From assembly GCA_965637545.1 (NCBI GenBank), contig OZ281495.1, forward strand, positions 5,642,001-5,706,000: DNA of 64,000 nt, in the 5' to 3' direction. Of the stretch, positions 3,462 through 35,300 are shown piece after piece. Source of the stretch: Phallusia mammillata (taxonomy: Eukaryota). The notes under the pieces are model-generated. The model was not told the DNA's origin and ran no database searches. It saw nothing but the letters and a program-made list of their open reading frames with translations. Both the position numbers and the translations under genes were made by a program. Position 1 is the stretch's first letter, and every line of letters starts with the position of its first letter.

Positions 3462-4019
3462 ATCAACTACTAGAGGTGGAATTTCGGGTGGGCTATTATG
3501 AAACTAAATTAAATAAACAAGTGGAATTATTGTGATCCTAAATTTTGGAAATAAATTTTAATTTGACATCCTACTTTGTTTCTGTTGATAACCCCACTAT
3601 TTACCCCGCTAGCCCCCTAAAATGTTTTTTTCACCCAAAGTTTGTCCGACTCGTTTTTCCATCAAATGTATGATGGATTTGGGTGAAATTTGCACAGATG
3701 GTAGATATAGTTATGTAGATGTGCATCCCACTTTGTTTGTGTTGATAGCCCCAGTACTTACCCCGCTAGCCCCCTAAAATGTTTTTTTGCCCTGCAAAGT
3801 TTGTCCGACTCGTTTTGCCATCAAATGTTTAATGGATTCGGATGAAACTTACACATATGGTAAAGATAGTTATGTAGATGTGATCCCACTTTCTAAGGTT
3901 ATAAAAGACGCTGGATAATGTGGGGCCCAATATAAAATAAGCAGAGGAAATATGTGAATGTTTTAAAATAGGTTATAGTGTATAGGCAATGACAAAATGT
4001 GCTAAGCCACCCTTCTAGT
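3462..4019. mobile_element. Interspersed repeat family copy 1 (candidate non-autonomous Helitron/Helentron) with two ~155-bp internal tandem units (3568-3885)
   Basis: Ends GCTAAGCCACCCTTCTAG|T (4000-4019), the reverse complement of ACTAGAAGGGTGGCTTAGC seen at 18441, 22919 and 26008; palindromic CC(A/T)CTAG(A/T)GG near the opposite end. Confidence 0.5.
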
Positions 4020-4109
4020 TATTAAACAAGAAACAGCACACTATGCAGATATATCAATTCTGAATGCAAATAAATGAAAAATCATAGTGTTAGTCTATGT
4101 TATATTTAA

Positions 4110-4132
4110 CAAGTCAAGTCAAGTCAAGTCAA
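4110..4132 (-). repeat. (GACTT)n microsatellite 3' tail of the LINE
   Basis: Plus strand reads CAAGT x4 + CAA, just past an AATAAA on the minus strand; short-repeat tails are typical of CR1/L2-group LINEs. Confidence 0.85.
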
Positions 4133-4195
4133 ATTTTTATTTGCATAGTCACTTCATCATTACAGTTCCATTGTTGAACGGATACGTAAACAGCA

Positions 4196-4236
4196 AGGAC
4201 ACCGAAAAAACCGTAGGTTATCGAGTCAAGTGTCCT
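4196..4236 (-). other. LINE 3'-terminal stem-loop (putative RT recognition element)
   Basis: AGGACAC (4196-4202) pairs with GTGTCCT (4230-4236), enclosing TTGACTCGATAACCTACGGTTTTTTCG on the minus strand. Confidence 0.65.
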
Positions 4237-4237
4237 G

Positions 4238-4489
4238 TTATTTGAATTGTGGTTGAATTCCGTTTTGGGTATGTCCTGCCGTAGGATCGCAACCGACCGC
4301 ACGAACCTGGCGGGGTACGTCCGGTTGCATAAGACGGTGTTTGAACCCGCAGGTTCTGCTGGCCAAATGAAACCCGCCTAAACGGAAACACCAGCTCGGT
4401 TCCTCGGAACGTTTCCTGTGATCCCGTAGGCAGACCCGGGTGTCCCGAGGACAGTTCGTTGCGACGATGAAACTGTTGTCGTCGAGCAT
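4238..4489 (-). CDS. Putative LINE ORF3, 83 aa (frame open from a splice acceptor at 4580), with two CCCH-like Cys/His clusters
   Basis: GC-rich island between the ORF2 stop and the 3' stem-loop; GTTTTTTCAG|A acceptor at 4581/4580, 30 in-frame codons before the ATG; motifs CPRDTRVCLRDH and CFRLGGFHLASRTCGFKH. Confidence 0.45.
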   Translation of the reverse strand: MLDDNSFIVATNCPRDTRVCLRDHRKRSEEPSWCFRLGGFHLASRTCGFKHRLMQPDVPRQVRAVGCDPTAGHTQNGIQPQFK

Positions 4490-4750
4490 CTCCTCCTCTG
4501 CTTTTGTAAGATCGATCTCGAGATCTCTGATGTTGTTCGCTGGGGAAGGTGCTGCACTGTCTTCGACCCGGATGGCTGATCTGAAAAAACCGAATCCTAC
4601 GGCAGTATTTTGTTCTTTTTATGTGACCAAGTTATCCAGTTTAATGATGTAATAGTATGGAATAAAAAGTCAAAAAGTAAAATCACACTAAGATAAAACT
4701 GAAACACACACAAAAAAAACACGAAAGAAAAAAAGTGAAAACTGTGGTAG

Positions 4751-7700
4751 TTATGACGTAGGAGAACAAGCTGTATTATATGAATTCTGGTATAGGCGAG
4801 GACAGGAAAGTGAAATAATTGTTGAGGGGTGATATTGCCTTAATAAATACAAGCGAAGCTGTTTCTTAAAAGAGGACAAGCGTGACAGAGACTTAATATC
4901 GCGTGGTAAGTCTTCCCATACTTTTGGACCTCGATGACAAATTGATCTTGTGCCGAACGCGGTGTTTACGCGTGGATGAAAGTAGTTCTGGTTTTCAGCC
5001 CTTCGGGTGTTGTAATGGTGTACTGACGTAATAGGTGTGAAAAGGGAGTTGTATGTGGAAGGTAGTGCACCAGTATGAAACGAATGCAGCAGTTTGGCTA
5101 CTTCAAGTTTGTAAATGTCTTTAAATTTTAGAAGACGCAAATCATGATATAGTGGAGTAGCGCGACATCGGTAAGGGCTGCGAGTAATAGCTCGCAAAAT
5201 TTTGTTATGTTTGATGTTAAGGGTTTTAATTGATGCAGCGTATCCGCTACCCCACGCCGCGATCGCATATTGCAGATAGGGGTACGCAAAAGAGTAATAA
5301 ATAATACGGAGAAACTGTTGTCCAAAGTAGTCACGCAGCTTGTACATGATACCGCAGGCTTGTGCTAGTTTTCGTTCCACATGAGCTATGTGTTTCTCCC
5401 ATTTTAACTGATCGTCGATATAAACTCCCAGGTATTTTGTTTCTGTTGATCGCTGTATTTGCTGAGATCCTATGGAAATCGAAAACTGCTGCGTGTTTAA
5501 GCGCTTGGAAGGACAAAACAGTAAATACGTTGTTTTACTCGTATTAAGAGATAGTTTGTTGTGGCGCATCCAGTTGTCGACATAAACGAGTTCCTTGTTT
5601 ACGTTGGCCTGTAGATCAGTCAGAGACTCTGATGACATGCTTAAACACGTGTCATCCGCAAAGAGTTTCGTTGTGAATTTAGATGCCGTTGGTAAATCGT
5701 TTATGTAAAGCGAAAAGAATAAAGGAGCCAGTGACGAACCTTGAGGGCAGCCACAGGTAACGTTTAGCAGTTTTGATGTTACGTTTTCTATGCGTGTGCA
5801 TTGTTTGCGGTGACTTAAATAGCTACGGAACATTTCTAAGGGGCTTCCCCGTATTCCGTACTGATGCTCCAACCTCCACAACAAAACCCTGTGATCGACT
5901 GTGTCAAACGCTTTTGATAAGTCTAGGAAAATAGCACATGTATATTTCTTCTGGTCAAGGGCGGCTAACACTCTTTCATGTATGTCATAAATTGCCAGGG
6001 ATGTGGACCGATTGCATCGAAAACCATACTGGTGAGTTGTTAACATTCCATTTTTTTCAACGTAGTTGTACAGACGTTGATATATAATTTTTTCAAAAAT
6101 CTTAGCGAAAGGGGACAGTAATGAAATTGGTCTGTAGTTAGTGCATTCAACTTGTGAACCTGTTTTATGAATTGGTATTACTTCCGCAATTTTAAGTTCA
6201 GTGGGGTATTCCCCATGCTGTATACACCAGTTAAAAGTCTCTGAAAGCAAAGGTGAAATAATGCTTTTGACCATTTTGATGTATTTGATAGGAATTTCAT
6301 GACTGGGCACAGACTTGCAACTGTCAAGAGTGGATATATACATTTCCACCTCATCTGGGGTAGTGTCATAGAAGAAGAAGGATGATGGCTTTGTTGTGAG
6401 GGAAATATCGGGTGGTGGCATTACTGGCTGTGGAATGGATGATGCCATATTTGCTCCTATGTTGGCAAAGAACTGGTTAAATTTGCTGGCCACAGTGATT
6501 GGGTCAGTAGTGCAATGTGCAGTACCATCTAGTTTTAGTTCAGTTGGAGCTTTGTGTAAAGTTTGTTTTCGGGACAACAATCTATTGATGATTTTCCACA
6601 TTTCACCAATATCATTTCTATGATCTGTTAGTTCTTTTTCAATATACCTGTGCTTAGCATCTCGTAAAATGTGATTAAGCTTGTTACGGTACTGTTTATA
6701 TTGGTTGTATTTACTTGTACTTGAGAAGCCTGACTTACATAATGCATGGTACATTTTATTTTTTATTTTGATTGACTTATAAATTCCCTTGCTTATCCAA
6801 GGTTTTTTGGCCAATTTCCTTCTTCTTCTAGTCATTGTGGTTAATGGTGCATGTCGTTCCAGTATTTCGTGGAATAAATGATTAAATGAAGTGAATTTAT
6901 GCAATATGGTTTCACTTGGTAGTGGTATGTTGCTAACAGCATCTTTAATGTCTGAAATAAAATCTTCACTGCAAAATGAGGTCTCATTTCTGCTTAAGAG
7001 TTTTTCTGTTCTATCACCACAAGTTGAATGCAATAACACAAAGACAGGAAGATGGTCTGAAATGTCTACAGTCAGTATTCCTGATTTGCAGGTAATATTT
7101 TGATTGTTGGTATAAAAATGGTCAAGGAGTGTTTGGCTATGGTTTGTTATACGTGTGGGTTGACATATTAATGATGATAGACCATAAATTTCCATAGAAT
7201 CTAAAAAGTTTTGAATGCCTTTTGCTTCCTTGTGCTGCATGAGGTCTATGTTGAAATCACCACATAAATAAACAGTTTGGTTGGCATCATTTAGTTTATG
7301 CAATGTAGATGATAGTGCATCCTGGAACACTTCAAATGAATGCTTTGGATGTCTGTATATTACTCCCAAAATAACATTTTTGTTTTTCAATTTAAGTTGG
7401 ACCCAAAGACTTTCAGTATCTGGGACAGTAATTTCCAAGTCTGGTCTTATACTATATGCAACATGTGATTTTATATATACTCCAACTCCTCCGGCACTAT
7501 GGGGAGTATCAGTGTGATGAAAGTTATATCCCATAATATCAGCATCAGTGCTTATGCCATTAAGGGTTATTCTAGTCTCAGTTATCATAACAATGTCAGG
7601 GGATCTGACCATATCAGACAGGAATAGTTCTAAGGCAGGTTTATTTTTTCTTAGGCTTCGAATATTTGTGTGCAATATATACATATCTTTGTTGCTATGT

Positions 7701-7921
7701 TGCTTCAGAGTACAGTTCAAGGATGCACAATCATAGTAGTCTGAATGGCTGTGACTAATGTTTGCTAGTAAACAGGGTGGATGTGTAGTTTTATTGGGTG
7801 AAATTACATGTACTAGCTCTAAGTTACTGATATTGCTGAAGGGTAAATTGGACAATAGGCATCGGGTACAAAAGTATGGGTTGTTGCTGTTGAGATCACT
7901 TGCGCATTTGTTACATTTCAT
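4751..7921 (-). CDS. LINE ORF2: apurinic-like endonuclease + reverse transcriptase (1056 aa, intact)
   Basis: APE motifs NIRSL, ITET, GGVGVY, VIYRHP, GDFNID, LLDH, SDHLPV; RT motifs NYRPISLL, FLDLSKAFDTVDH, GCPQGSSLAPLFF, FADD, KYLGV; N-terminal CxxC PHD-like remnant. Confidence 0.97.
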   Translation of the reverse strand: MKCNKCASDLNSNNPYFCTRCLLSNLPFSNISNLELVHVISPNKTTHPPCLLANISHSHSDYYDCASLNCTLKQHSNKDMYILHTNIRSLRKNKPALELFLSDMVRSPDIVMITETRITLNGISTDADIMGYNFHHTDTPHSAGGVGVYIKSHVAYSIRPDLEITVPDTESLWVQLKLKNKNVILGVIYRHPKHSFEVFQDALSSTLHKLNDANQTVYLCGDFNIDLMQHKEAKGIQNFLDSMEIYGLSSLICQPTRITNHSQTLLDHFYTNNQNITCKSGILTVDISDHLPVFVLLHSTCGDRTEKLLSRNETSFCSEDFISDIKDAVSNIPLPSETILHKFTSFNHLFHEILERHAPLTTMTRRRRKLAKKPWISKGIYKSIKIKNKMYHALCKSGFSSTSKYNQYKQYRNKLNHILRDAKHRYIEKELTDHRNDIGEMWKIINRLLSRKQTLHKAPTELKLDGTAHCTTDPITVASKFNQFFANIGANMASSIPQPVMPPPDISLTTKPSSFFFYDTTPDEVEMYISTLDSCKSVPSHEIPIKYIKMVKSIISPLLSETFNWCIQHGEYPTELKIAEVIPIHKTGSQVECTNYRPISLLSPFAKIFEKIIYQRLYNYVEKNGMLTTHQYGFRCNRSTSLAIYDIHERVLAALDQKKYTCAIFLDLSKAFDTVDHRVLLWRLEHQYGIRGSPLEMFRSYLSHRKQCTRIENVTSKLLNVTCGCPQGSSLAPLFFSLYINDLPTASKFTTKLFADDTCLSMSSESLTDLQANVNKELVYVDNWMRHNKLSLNTSKTTYLLFCPSKRLNTQQFSISIGSQQIQRSTETKYLGVYIDDQLKWEKHIAHVERKLAQACGIMYKLRDYFGQQFLRIIYYSFAYPYLQYAIAAWGSGYAASIKTLNIKHNKILRAITRSPYRCRATPLYHDLRLLKFKDIYKLEVAKLLHSFHTGALPSTYNSLFTPITSVHHYNTRRAENQNYFHPRVNTAFGTRSICHRGPKVWEDLPRDIKSLSRLSSFKKQLRLYLLRQYHPSTIISLSCPRLYQNSYNTACSPTS

Positions 7922-7961
7922 GTGAGAAAAGGATTAAGGAATTTTGTAGATTAAACTGCAA

Positions 7962-8738
7962 CTATTGTAAATAAATCTTATGCCTTACCAAGTCTTTGTC
8001 ACTCCGGATGGCTATGATGTTACTGTCGTCATCCTTCTTCAAGAATGTCACTCCGTTTCTTGTCCAAATGTGGTTGAAGTGTTGCTCCCTCTTGAACCGG
8101 AGACAGTTATTAAATCTCTCCCTGTTCTTCTTTGTCAGGCTCTCATTAATAAAGATTTGATTGACCGGGGCTACACCTTTGTTGGAATGTTTTAATTTGT
8201 ACTGGTTAGAGTATATTGCATCCCTCACTTTCCGGCTCATAAACTTAGCTATGATTGCTGGACGGGGATGATCTTTAGTAGATCTCCTTAGTCGGTGCGA
8301 GATGCTTATGTCAGGTTTGGAGATGGTGATTCCTAACCTCTTTACTGCAGAGATGACTAAATCATCTGTGCACTCATTTTCCAAATATGGCAGTCCCTTA
8401 AACTCCAAGCACGGTCTCCGACCATATTGCTCGAGATCATTTAGGTTCTCGGCATTGGAGGTGGCTTGCGCCTGTAGATCTTTAACAGCTTTTTTTAGTT
8501 CCTTATTTTCAGTTTTTAAGATTTTCATTTCAGCTTCGTTTTTTACCAGCTGAGTTTTAACATTTTCATATTGATCTTGCAAGAATTTTTGGCTCTTGCG
8601 GATCTCCCTTAGCTCGTTGATCAGTTCTTTTAGGGTTGAGTCAGTGGAGGTTTTACTCTCCCGAACCTCATCCCTCAGGGATTCTATCTTCTCAAGAACC
8701 AAAGATTGTTCTTCCTTCTTTTTCTTTAATTGAGACAT
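7962..8738 (-). CDS. LINE ORF1 (coiled coil + RRM-like/CTD, L1-ORF1-type), 258 aa
   Basis: Heptad-rich N-terminus then LEQYGRR..LEFKGLP, DISISHRL, IIAKF, IFINESLT, WTRNG; lies 40 nt upstream of ORF2. Confidence 0.92.
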   Translation of the reverse strand: MSQLKKKKEEQSLVLEKIESLRDEVRESKTSTDSTLKELINELREIRKSQKFLQDQYENVKTQLVKNEAEMKILKTENKELKKAVKDLQAQATSNAENLNDLEQYGRRPCLEFKGLPYLENECTDDLVISAVKRLGITISKPDISISHRLRRSTKDHPRPAIIAKFMSRKVRDAIYSNQYKLKHSNKGVAPVNQIFINESLTKKNRERFNNCLRFKREQHFNHIWTRNGVTFLKKDDDSNIIAIRSDKDLVRHKIYLQ

Positions 8739-8807
8739 ATTCCAAAGTTTTCACACAATATTTCAGCAGATCACTTTTTTGTATTTAAATAATGCTACCT
8801 AGGCAAC

Positions 8808-8823
8808 CTTATTCAAATAGAAT
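8808..8823 (-). other. Perfect copy of the ascidian (Ciona-type) 16-nt spliced leader ATTCTATTTGAATAAG at the LINE 5' terminus
   Basis: Plus strand CTTATTCAAATAGAAT; reverse complement is 16/16 identical to the known Ciona SL, 70 nt upstream of the ORF1 ATG and abutting the CAAG direct repeat. Confidence 0.85.
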
Positions 8824-9080
8824 CAAGGTTCTAGGCATGTCATTACAGAGGAAGTGGACACTATGTAAATGTATAACTCACTTAATAAATGTAAAATAGT
8901 TTGATCTAAAAAACAAACATATTATTATGTATAACTATGGTTATTTTATGTTTAGATTATAGCACACATTTTCAGAATGGCTGAGAATCAATTGGATAAA
9001 ATATTGCCTTAGATGGATTGAGTATTGATGCTTTTTTATGTTTGGTTAAACTTCTCTGTCTGCAATGAAGTCTCAATAAG

Positions 9081-32360: not shown

Positions 32361-35300
32361 CTAGCGGCGCAAACTGTTATGTACGGTTGCCAGGAAGATC
32401 GTCCTGGCATTGCTATTGTCGCAACAATGACTTTGTGACGTAAAATCCATTGTGGTGCAATTACCTTGTGCGAGACCGCATGGTTATTAGTTATTAGTGT
32501 CTGTGATGTGCTGAACGCATGAAAGTGAATTGTGATAGCTAAGTAACGACATTCTGATTCTATTTGAAACAGAAATTTTACTGCAAATGTGCAAAAGTTG
32601 TACCTAAGTAAATTGGACCTGTGAACTTTGCGCTGAGCATTGGAATATTGTGACCCGACTAATTTACTGTGGGCAAGATTCGGCGTACATCGATCTGTGC
32701 GAGGAAGTGACTTGGTTGCATTGCTGTACGCCGGTATGTTTTAATGTAATGGCCTGTATCTTGGTGTGTTTTTACATGTTTTACTCATTACGCCTTACGA
32801 TATTTACAGTGTGAAAACCGTAATCTGTGATTTCCAACTGGGAAGTCTAATGCCTGGACCGATCAAAGTTCGGTACGTTATTTGTTTCTCTCCTGTAAAT
32901 GCGTTTGTCGTTGTTCCTCGTTCTGACTTTTACTAGTGTTGTTATGTTTGCAGAAAACCGCGTTTATTGCGCGCGTCATTCATCTTGGTCGAAATAAAAA
33001 TTCTGTTGCTCGCACTGGTAGCTTGTCCAGGCGCTGCACTGAAGGTGCGACGCTACACACCGAACACGCCTAACAGATGCACATCTGCTAGAGTCATTGA
33101 GAGTGTGTCAAAACTATACACCGGACTACAGTTTTAAACTAAACACTCCAAGAGACAAGTGAACGAAATGGAATGCCAGGGTTCTCAATAACGGGCTGAC
33201 CTAGCAGAACAGTGTTGTCTTGACAATCGATTATTGTTTAAGCTCGCTTCAAATTTCTTTACAAAACCTCATGCATTAAAAAATTTAACGCCACTGTTAC
33301 TTGTGTTTTAACTTATTAGCCATTTGATGGCCATAGCGTAGCGCGTGGCCTTAATAAACTTGGTGACCCCTGAGATAGACTGTTGTCGCCGGCCGCGCAA
33401 AATCAGCGCGCACAGCCCGGATGTGGCTCGATTTTAAATATTATCTTAGGAATCTAAGACGTTTTACAAGAATACGTCAACCCAGACAATTATTGTGTTA
33501 GTAATTGCCTTTTTCATACTTGTTGAAGATGTGTTATGGATTTTTATTGTTATGTGTTATGGATTTTTATTGATATACAACAATTACAACTGCATTTAAA
33601 TTCTTTACAATATATTCTTTAGGATTAAGGCATTTTTTATTTTACCACATACTAAATCTGCATACGTACTTTTGATGCTATGGCCTCATTCAAATAGACA
33701 TTAGCAACAGTTGTCATTGATAGATCCATTGAATAGATTGCTTTGGAGGTAGCGTTTGCCCCCCTTGCTTGTTTATCACTTGGTGATAATGTAAAGTTGC
33801 TTTCATTATCTGTAGAACACAACAAAGAAAAGGTAGACTTGACTGGATGAAGACAAAAAGCACTGAGCTAAATTCAATTAGATTTCATTACAACAGTGCG
33901 GTAATATAAATTAGCATTTGCTATCACATTTTTGCAACCTAAAATTCCAACATTTTCAAGTGAAAAAAAAAATAGTTCTGAACTAGTGCAAGAACCAGAA
34001 AGACTGCCACACTGATTTAAAATGTGGTACTATTAAAAATTAAAAAAATACTTTGCAAAGTCACCCATATACACGATACTATCCAGAAATTTTTGAAATA
34101 TATTTTGCTTTAGGACGTTGCAAGCTACAAGGCATCGCTTTAAAATTTACTCAAGAAAACTAGTTGCTTATACATTGCACAGCAAGTGGCGAAGTGTGGT
34201 GCCAATCAGGTGGCCGCATTTTTACCTCACGGGCAAAATGCATCTTTTTTTTCGCCGACCAGTCTTCTCGAGTTTTAAAAATAGGCAGAATTAAAAATAA
34301 CAAAGCATTTTCAAAACAAGCGTGTCTGTCGGGTTAAACCAAATTTAGATTGTTGCCTAAATAGCATAGATCGGTACTACCACACCTTAACGCATTTCCA
34401 AAGCGTTTTGCACCTATTTTCCTAAGTTTGTGAGGCTTAACAATTACGTGTTTCAAACAACACATCTGATCGCTCAGGAATGAAATATATGGTACTTGTC
34501 AATTTAGACCCAAACTTTTAACGTTAATTGTAACAAAAACACAAAAAATATAAACAACAATGGAAGTATGCGTCACAAAATACATCACTTAGGCGTAATG
34601 AGATAATTATTTGAATACGAAGAGATTATAGAAAGAATATGAAAATTAATTACAAAATTTGATGATAGATTTATGATCGTGCTGATACTTGTGACAGCTT
34701 GAGTTAAGACTTTAGCGGAATGCCGCTCCGGTACTGATTTTTTTACCCCCAACGGCTACTAATCCTGCTTACCCTACTGGTCTGGTAATGAGATAACAAT
34801 AGTTGAAAAATTTCTCGTTTACTACAGTCATTATAGTATAGTGCAAGGGTGGGCAACCTACCACCTGCGACCACATTAAAAATACGTATTTTTTTATCGG
34901 CCGGATGCGATTGATGCGTTACATACCTTACACAAAAGAGTTTTTATATTAAACGCCGATAGTAAATTGTTTATCATCACAAATAAGCATTGTTACGTAC
35001 AAAAGAATATTGTGCGTTTGTAAGTACTGTATAGTTTACTTGAAATTGCAACCACCCCCGAGCCTTGAATACGATTCACCGTAAACAAACAAAAAGAGAT
35101 GTCATTTTTGAACACCCTGTTCACTCGGCTATCCATTTGAACTGTTTGATTTTAACTCACTATGCTTGTTACAAGTTTGTTGCTGTGTGTTTCACTGCTC
35201 GCCACACTCACTTTCTTGTAACCTCTAAACACCTTATTATACGATATGCATTGCATTTACCCATCATCACCCAATTACCCAGACTCTTTTGGCGCCTCTT

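Follow-up and report, generated by a model that had tools for sequence, protein, structure and literature searches.

A LINE family headed by the host spliced leader in the genome of the ascidian Phallusia mammillata

Internal promoters, or insertion beside host promoters, are the known answers of LINEs to the problem of regenerating a complete 5' end. The ascidian LINE family described here shares this need with human L1, which uses a YY1 box, and with Drosophila jockey and I, and its distant ORF1 relatives carry a YY1-like box in their first ~25 nt. In contrast to these internal-promoter LINEs, the ascidian family has the host spliced leader (SL) at the position of the box, where a promoter role of the SL is only hypothetical.

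Several links between SLs and retroposition have been described. Dinoflagellate retrogenes carry DNA-encoded SL relics, which are found in tandem through repeated trans-splicing and retroposition (PMC5585692, PMC6050394, PMC12014239). The ascidian family resembles them in the encoding of the host SL at the 5' end of retroposed copies and in its tandem relics; however, the dinoflagellate copies are protist host-gene retrocopies with relics cut at an internal AG, whereas the ascidian element is an autonomous chordate LINE whose SL, itself ending in AG, is retained at full length for that reason and is fixed in the family. NeSL of nematodes and SLACS/CZAR of trypanosomes are likewise non-LTR retrotransposons linked to the SL, but these target SL RNA genes via a restriction-like endonuclease, whereas the ascidian LINE has the SL inside the insertion, dispersed non-SL sites and an AP-type endonuclease.

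In Schistosoma mansoni, some retrotransposons were suggested in 2018 to be "trans-spliced retro-transcribed elements" (PMC5832876). SL-containing retrotransposons were suspected there too, but on the basis of six gene models with an internal SL, for which the authors allowed misassembly; neither boundaries nor empty sites were given, and no family was analyzed. U6-L1 and other snRNA-LINE chimeric retrocopies also have a small nuclear RNA fused to the 5' end of a LINE-made copy; those chimeras are dead-end products of template switching with variable junctions, whereas the junction described here is exact, of splice type, and heritable in an autonomous family. We found no report of an SL-headed LINE family in tunicates in the literature searched, which left most subscription journals out of reach, and absence is not proven. 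SL relics on dinoflagellate retrogenes, SL-gene-targeting LINEs and an unresolved suspicion in Schistosoma are already known; within the literature searched, an autonomous tunicate LINE family headed by the SL is not described.

The window analyzed is a stretch of 64 kb, and contains an intact LINE of 4,714 bp on the minus strand (window positions 4110-8823), with ORF1 and an APE/RT ORF2 both open. The first 16 nt of the insertion are the SL (8808..8823, minus strand), identical at all 16 positions to the published Ciona SL: the minus strand from 8823 to 8808 reads ATTCTATTTGAATAAG, then GTTGCC, and the post-SL sequence of the LINE is gttgcctaggtagc. The remaining 69 nt of the 5' UTR (8739..8807, minus strand) are conserved between subfamilies over the first ~26 nt and variable in the rest. 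They are followed on the same strand by ORF1 (7962..8738; 258 aa), with a coiled-coil N-terminal part and a Baculo_FP_2nd domain, and by ORF2 (4751..7921; 1056 aa), with an AP-endonuclease and a reverse transcriptase (domains Exo_endo_phos, 9.3e-11, and RVT_1, 1.7e-32). A 620-nt 3' UTR (4131..4750, minus strand) leads to a (GACTT)4G microsatellite tail, which is the 3' end of the insertion (4110..4130, minus strand). The criteria for an APE-type LINE are fulfilled by the ORF2 domains, an empty site with short shared target letters, the 3' tail repeat and an excess of 5'-truncated copies.

The LINE is flanked at both ends by CTTG (CAAG on the plus strand), which lies upstream at 8827..8824 and closes the (GACTT)n tail at 4113..4110. 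The CTTG at the 5' junction (8824..8827, minus strand) is a copy of the target site, representing either a 4-bp duplication or microhomology with the tail. Contigs from four public runs of the same organism were placed on window 3950-8950. One contig from run X5 represents the empty allele: in it, 4109 is followed directly by 8824, the 4,714 bases between them are missing, and 4 letters fit either side; the empty site is ...AGAACCTTG|TTAAATATAAC... Because of this joint, the insertion comprises exactly 4110-8823, and SL base 1 is the first inserted base. The insertion is polymorphic, and is a clean, intact example of an SL-headed LINE. The empty allele rests on this single contig, with a short side of 22 letters, and its support is good rather than overwhelming.

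The 16-mer at the LINE head is the published Ciona SL (PMC1488885 Table 1; PMC7986045). In the whole 64-kb window, ATTCTATTTGAATAAG is found exactly only at the LINE head, and a search with ≤2 mismatches gave 2 matches vs 0.14 expected from shuffles. The 240-Mb assembly contains 3,860 exact copies, vs 0 for a reversed-pattern control. SL RNA genes headed by the same 16-mer account for 2,887 copies, each continuing GTAAGCAT, mostly in tandem arrays of 553-bp period. One array unit reads SL|gtaagcatcatactcctcggagtaactttttt, corresponding to a donor site, a small stem-loop and a U-tract (SL|gtaagc..., the stem tactc/gagta, then acttttttcc), and the sequence upstream of the SL RNA gene is ...cctcaaaacggc. 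A genome search for the SL with the Sm motif of C. intestinalis, AGCTTTGG, behind it had 0 matches, and the real gene was found via a GT-extended pattern; the absence of this motif therefore points to a related ascidian with the same SL exon and a different SL RNA intron. These genes show that the 16-mer is the host's own SL, while its use on mRNAs is published for Ciona and is inferred for this species.

The intron of the SL RNA shows no likeness to the LINE sequence after the SL. Since the two are unlike, and since the join falls exactly at the 3' end of the SL exon, the SL-LINE junction is a splice junction; an exact exon-end junction is predicted by splicing, and not by template switching onto SL RNA or by insertion into an SL gene. 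On genomic evidence, three criteria for an SL-relic retrocopy are fulfilled: the host has SL RNA genes with a GT donor, a stem-loop and a U-tract; at the 5' boundary of the copy the SL exon meets the retroposed sequence precisely with its 3' end; and stacked relics are present.

A preliminary description of the window, made from sequence alone, had placed the start of the LINE at 8823, with the SL as its first 16 nt and CAAG just outside it and at the tail, and this held (exact 16/16 match, empty allele). Its identification of the 16-mer as the Ciona SL held as well, on the published tables and on the same exon in the 2,887 SL RNA genes, as did its statement that no SL RNA intron or Sm site follows, the SL RNA gene continuing instead with gtaagcatcatactcctcggagtaactttttt, unlike the LINE. 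The label "Crack-like" was its suggestion only; what is established is an APE-type LINE. Its list of known links between SLs and retroelements was incomplete, and missed the 2018 Schistosoma report (PMC5832876).

A genome search with the first 324 nt of the element returned 22 loci with the family 5' region. After alignment and removal of segmental duplicates (L036/38/42/44, L037/41 and L049/50, whose upstream 1.5 kb are common at 94-99.9% identity), 15 independent insertions remained, in subfamilies ranging from ~100% to ~75% identity. Homology stops at the SL in 15/15, and the upstream flanks are unrelated to each other. A perfect 16-mer stands at the terminus in 10 of the 15. One SL substitution (A at nt 13) is present in L033 and two in L052; L032 starts at SL nt 2 (C at nt 1) and has a private T at nt 25, and L040 and L043 begin inside the SL, at nt 8 and 9. 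The starts at nt 8/9 (two copies) are ordinary small 5' truncations, and these and the start at nt 2 (one copy) are expected if the SL belongs to the RNA template; deeper truncations were found in L039 (at ~nt 50) and L051 (at nt 235). None of the 22 loci has an outron with an AG acceptor where the SL would stand, and all 15 genome occurrences of the exact head motif lie within family loci. Because all 15 independent 5'-complete insertions carry the SL, it is constitutive for the family. Because these copies are related by descent, they stand not for 15 separate splicing events but for a single ancient capture, with two double-SL events added later.

The search for 3' ends gave 445 candidates in the genome, at least 11 of them at 99-100% identity, vs the 22 loci with the 5' region. 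L032 and the window copy have 4 differences in 1,824 positions, and recent copies are 99.7-100% identical. The family is young and mostly 5'-truncated, and is likely to be still active.

A second, upstream SL is present in two independent copies. L047 has the layout SL (15/16), 12-13 nt, SL, body, and L049/L050 have SL, GAA, SL nt 4-16, body; the upstream SLs of both end at the exon boundary. Such layouts are expected if a transcript begun upstream of an existing copy used an AG of the flank for trans-splicing before it was retrotransposed. From these two genomic copies, and without read-level RNA evidence, it follows that trans-splicing and then retrotransposition have acted on read-in RNAs of the family. 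Stacked relics from repeated rounds are present both in the family (L047, L049/L050) and in other units (L004, L006, L061).

The preliminary description had offered two options, a LINE transcript that was SL-trans-spliced and fully reverse-transcribed, and a family that carries the SL permanently. Both held in part, the first through the splice-type junction and the double-SL copies, and the second through the SL on all 15 independent 5'-complete insertions. The source copy with an upstream outron that the first option implied was not found among the 22 loci. The alignment of 5' ends, which it had proposed as a check, gave independent 5'-complete copies that all start in the SL and none with outron plus AG, i.e., a constitutive SL. 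It had named as refuting any LINE homology upstream of 8823 in other copies, a different SL in this species, or an SL RNA gene at the empty site; there is no upstream homology between independent copies, the SL of the species is identical, and no SL RNA gene lies at the empty site.

Contigs from runs X1 and X6 cover the whole element; that these runs are RNA is a guess from their small size. One X1 contig ends 5 letters from SL base 1, beyond it, and the upstream flank is covered by none. This contig is from another copy, because of a 9-nt insertion at 8736. Contigs cannot show starts, and the X1 and X6 data are therefore merely consistent with SL-headed transcripts. Since the SL is encoded in the DNA, an SL-bearing contig is uninformative on splicing of the element transcript.

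A 5'-terminal hairpin is predicted at 8782..8819 (minus strand), in which SL nt 5-15 pair with element nt 32-42 and an inner 5-bp stem (nt 17-21/26-30) closes the loop. The 3' arm lies within nt 32-45, and has a 12/14 match to the SL reverse complement, which was reached by 76/5000 shuffles (1.5%) and is modestly significant. Four subfamily members have the same minimum-energy fold (MFE -10.6 to -12.9 kcal/mol, z -1.6 to -4.0), and pairing is retained in 93% of cells across 12 distinct sequences, vs 35-49% in slid controls. No compensatory changes were found across the 12 distinct sequences, only one-sided U-A/U-G changes, and the covariation shuffle control was uninformative. The hairpin is absent from a metagenome relative of 51% identity. 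Between subfamilies, conservation at almost the level of the SL extends into the next ~26 nt. We treat the hairpin, in which a decayed inverted SL copy is predicted to pair with the SL, as real in the sequence, while any function of it is inferred. An alternative origin of the 3' arm as a direct SL relic was rejected, since 870/5000 shuffles were as good.

ORF1 relatives from the protein collection were traced to their source contigs. A metagenome contig with 51% ORF1 identity (L089) has a 15/16 SL, AATCTATTTGAATAAG, 32 nt before the ATG, and two others (L086/87 and L090) have partial or variant SL-like heads. Relatives at 35-39% ORF1 identity, from other assemblies, are represented by six contigs with different flanks, which all start near AGTGGAAGCACCAAACCAAGATGGCGAC; the SL is absent at the heads of these six contigs, which start ...ACCAAGATGGCGAC. 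A conserved CCAAGATGGCG(A/G) box was observed within ~25 nt of the 5' end in L092-L097 (e.g. GCA_949826985.1), L091 and L098-L100. The core of this box resembles the YY1 site that fixes the start of human L1. From the contrast with these relatives, we infer that a start-site element was replaced at this position by the SL in the ascidian lineage.

Outside canonical SL RNA genes, the genome contains ~973 exact SL 16-mers. A sample of 60 dispersed SLs (loci within L001-L030 and L054-L083) precedes many unrelated sequences, including other LINE-like units. One unit behind a dispersed SL (L003) gave one weak endonuclease match in an ORF, and Pfam searches on other SL-headed loci gave nothing useful. 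Position -1 is G in 32/60 distinct dispersed SLs vs 18% background (p 1e-9), and positions -2/-1 are AG in 15/60. Reverse transcription of a cap yields an extra G. The G excess possibly reflects cap reverse transcription, with which it fits, and a target preference may contribute; in the window copy, the G at -1 belongs to the CTTG of the target.

We favor, with a probability of about 0.55, the reading in which the SL was joined by trans-splicing, is now the fixed 5' terminus of the family, and is most likely also renewed on read-in transcripts. Trans-splicing is taken as the SL source because the junction lies at the SL exon end without likeness to the intron, and because a second, upstream SL is present in two independent copies. 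The exact SL, the insertion boundary, the family-wide SL, the splice-type junction, the double-SL copies and the recent activity are shown. In the proposed mechanism, the host SL would be joined to LINE RNA by SL trans-splicing, and the SL-bearing RNA would be reverse-transcribed to its very 5' end at the target, placing the SL in the DNA. A transcript reading into such a copy from upstream would undergo a further round of trans-splicing; its usual acceptor would be the final AG of the encoded SL, with an AG of the flank used at times. Trans-splicing at the AG of the encoded SL would swap it for a fresh, capped SL, and the element would gain a capped and precise 5' end from host machinery without a promoter that starts at its first base. 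The renewal of the SL in every cycle, the acceptor used and the role of the 5' hairpin are all inferred.

Several points count against the trans-splicing reading. There is no read-level RNA evidence, only contigs; an outron replaces the SL in none of the 22 loci; and the near-equal conservation of the SL and the 26 nt behind it would suit an internal promoter or a different cis element as well. By the usual preferences at 3' splice sites, GAATAAG|G, with which the SL ends, looks weak as an acceptor. The shared ancestry of the 15 copies and the single contig behind the empty allele also count here.

The strongest rival is a single capture followed by inheritance, which we regard as less likely than not. 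It holds that trans-splicing took place once in an ancestor, that an internal promoter starts at SL base 1, and that the SL has been kept as an initiator, a cap-proximal translation signal or a structure. In its favor, every 5'-complete copy has the SL, no outron-bearing source is found among the 22 loci, and the SL is conserved as a block with the next ~26 nt, for which a hairpin is predicted. The element starts with ATTCT, in agreement with the A+1-N-W-Y-Y portion of the initiator consensus, and the SL RNA gene of Ascaris has the SL sequence itself as a promoter element. A YY1-like start-site box stands at the same place in distant relatives, and the lineage would therefore normally define its 5' end internally. 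Against single capture, trans-splicing and retrotransposition of the family's read-in RNAs are shown by the double-SL copies, and a general splicing route is the simpler account of the hundreds of unrelated units that begin with an SL. This rival stays alive because the following 26 nt are near-equally conserved and the SL's own acceptor is weak-looking.

Template switching, in which the LINE enzyme jumped to free SL RNA or to an SL-bearing mRNA and the chimera became the family master, is very unlikely. LINE reverse transcriptases do switch templates, as in the U6-L1 chimeric retrocopies, and one such event would pass to all copies. However, the junction lies exactly at the last base of the SL exon, the SL RNA intron (gtaagcat...) is wholly absent, and the exon boundary is likewise where both of the upstream SLs acquired later stop. 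Two dispersed loci (L058 and L075; SL plus gtaagcat) show how copies of unspliced SL RNA look.

We regard as still less probable a target-site artefact, in which the element inserts into SL RNA genes and the SL is that of the target; for the window copy it is refuted by the empty site. NeSL, SLACS and CZAR do insert in this way, and the SL arrays on contig C3 are interrupted by gaps of 4.7-5.1 kb. Against it, the empty allele is without an SL, the upstream flanks of the 15 independent copies are unlike each other and unlike ...cctcaaaacggc, and the 3' flank of the LINE is not SL RNA intron. The window LINE fails the criteria for SL-gene targeting, as the ORF2 endonuclease is AP-type and not restriction-like, and SL gene sequence is not present on both sides. 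A chance match of an AT-rich 16-mer, for which only its AT-richness speaks, is all but excluded by the exactness of the match, the 0.14 matches expected per window at ≤2 mismatches, the 0 reversed-control vs 3,860 real genome matches, and the recurrence of the SL at the same position in all family members.

A bolder form of the trans-splicing reading is possible, though less likely than not, in which the LINE lineage dropped its start-site promoter and relies on host trans-splicing. The AG of the encoded SL would recreate the acceptor, the inverted SL copy 16 nt downstream would pair in cis (as the hairpin) or in trans with incoming SL RNA, and read-in transcripts would be trimmed to an exact start and given an SL cap. 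If true, this would be a self-renewing, promoter-independent answer to the 5'-end problem of LINEs, common to several retroelement families in this genome.

A chordate LINE family that is autonomous and begins with the SL suggests a third route to 5'-end regeneration, besides the two known ones, in which host trans-splicing is borrowed to define and cap the RNA. In ascidian genomes, as in dinoflagellates, the SL is a built-in tag for retroposed RNAs, and the ~970 dispersed SLs could serve to date and catalogue retroposition in this genome. Whether an encoded SL is replaced by a fresh one could be tested simply from reads, in copies whose encoded SL is mutated.

Further observations concern the dispersed SLs. 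Around position 1500 of the respective loci, L004 has an SL, SL nt 3-16 and a third decayed SL (stacked relics), L006 has an SL, c and a decayed SL, L007 has an inverted SL pair that forms a long hairpin, and in L061 SL+GTAC recurs ~40 nt downstream. L058 (C1:12449884) and L075 (C2:7309959) are dispersed single SLs followed by the intron start (gtaagcata...), i.e., unspliced SL RNA sequence outside arrays. An SL pair spaced 264 bp apart on C1 was first read as an SL gene repeat, and this was rejected, the pair being a decayed array of another unit. A number of loci (L002, L007, L009-L016, L025, L027, L070, L071 and L077-L083) have the SL, a few bases, then CTGATGA/ATGATG ... GGC(A/G)AAATAT-like motifs. 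No hammerhead was found by Rfam, at gathering score or at E ≤ 1, in the units with a dispersed SL and CTGATGA...GAAA-like motifs, and L007 gave sub-threshold generic hairpin matches only.

On contig C3 (13% of the genome), SL RNA arrays with the 553-bp period were observed at C3:11108338-11193360 (sample L084). Gaps of ~4.7-5.1 kb, and a single gap of 9.7 kb, break up the SL arrays on this contig and have the look of elements inserted into the array. C3 also has 16/22 of the family 5' loci, which span 4.7-17.6 Mb; they lie mostly at 11.8-17.6 Mb, adjoining the SL array, several of them in segmental duplications with at least 1.5 kb of flank at 94-99.9%.

Within the window, an SL-like sequence with a 14/16 match, ATTCTATTTGAAACAG, lies at 32557-32572 (plus strand), preceded by cattctg; chance and a decayed SL are both possible. 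At the 3' flank of the LINE (window 3950-4116), the summed contig depth in DNA runs is ~100-fold above that of the LINE body, and the LINE therefore adjoins or sits inside another high-copy repeat.
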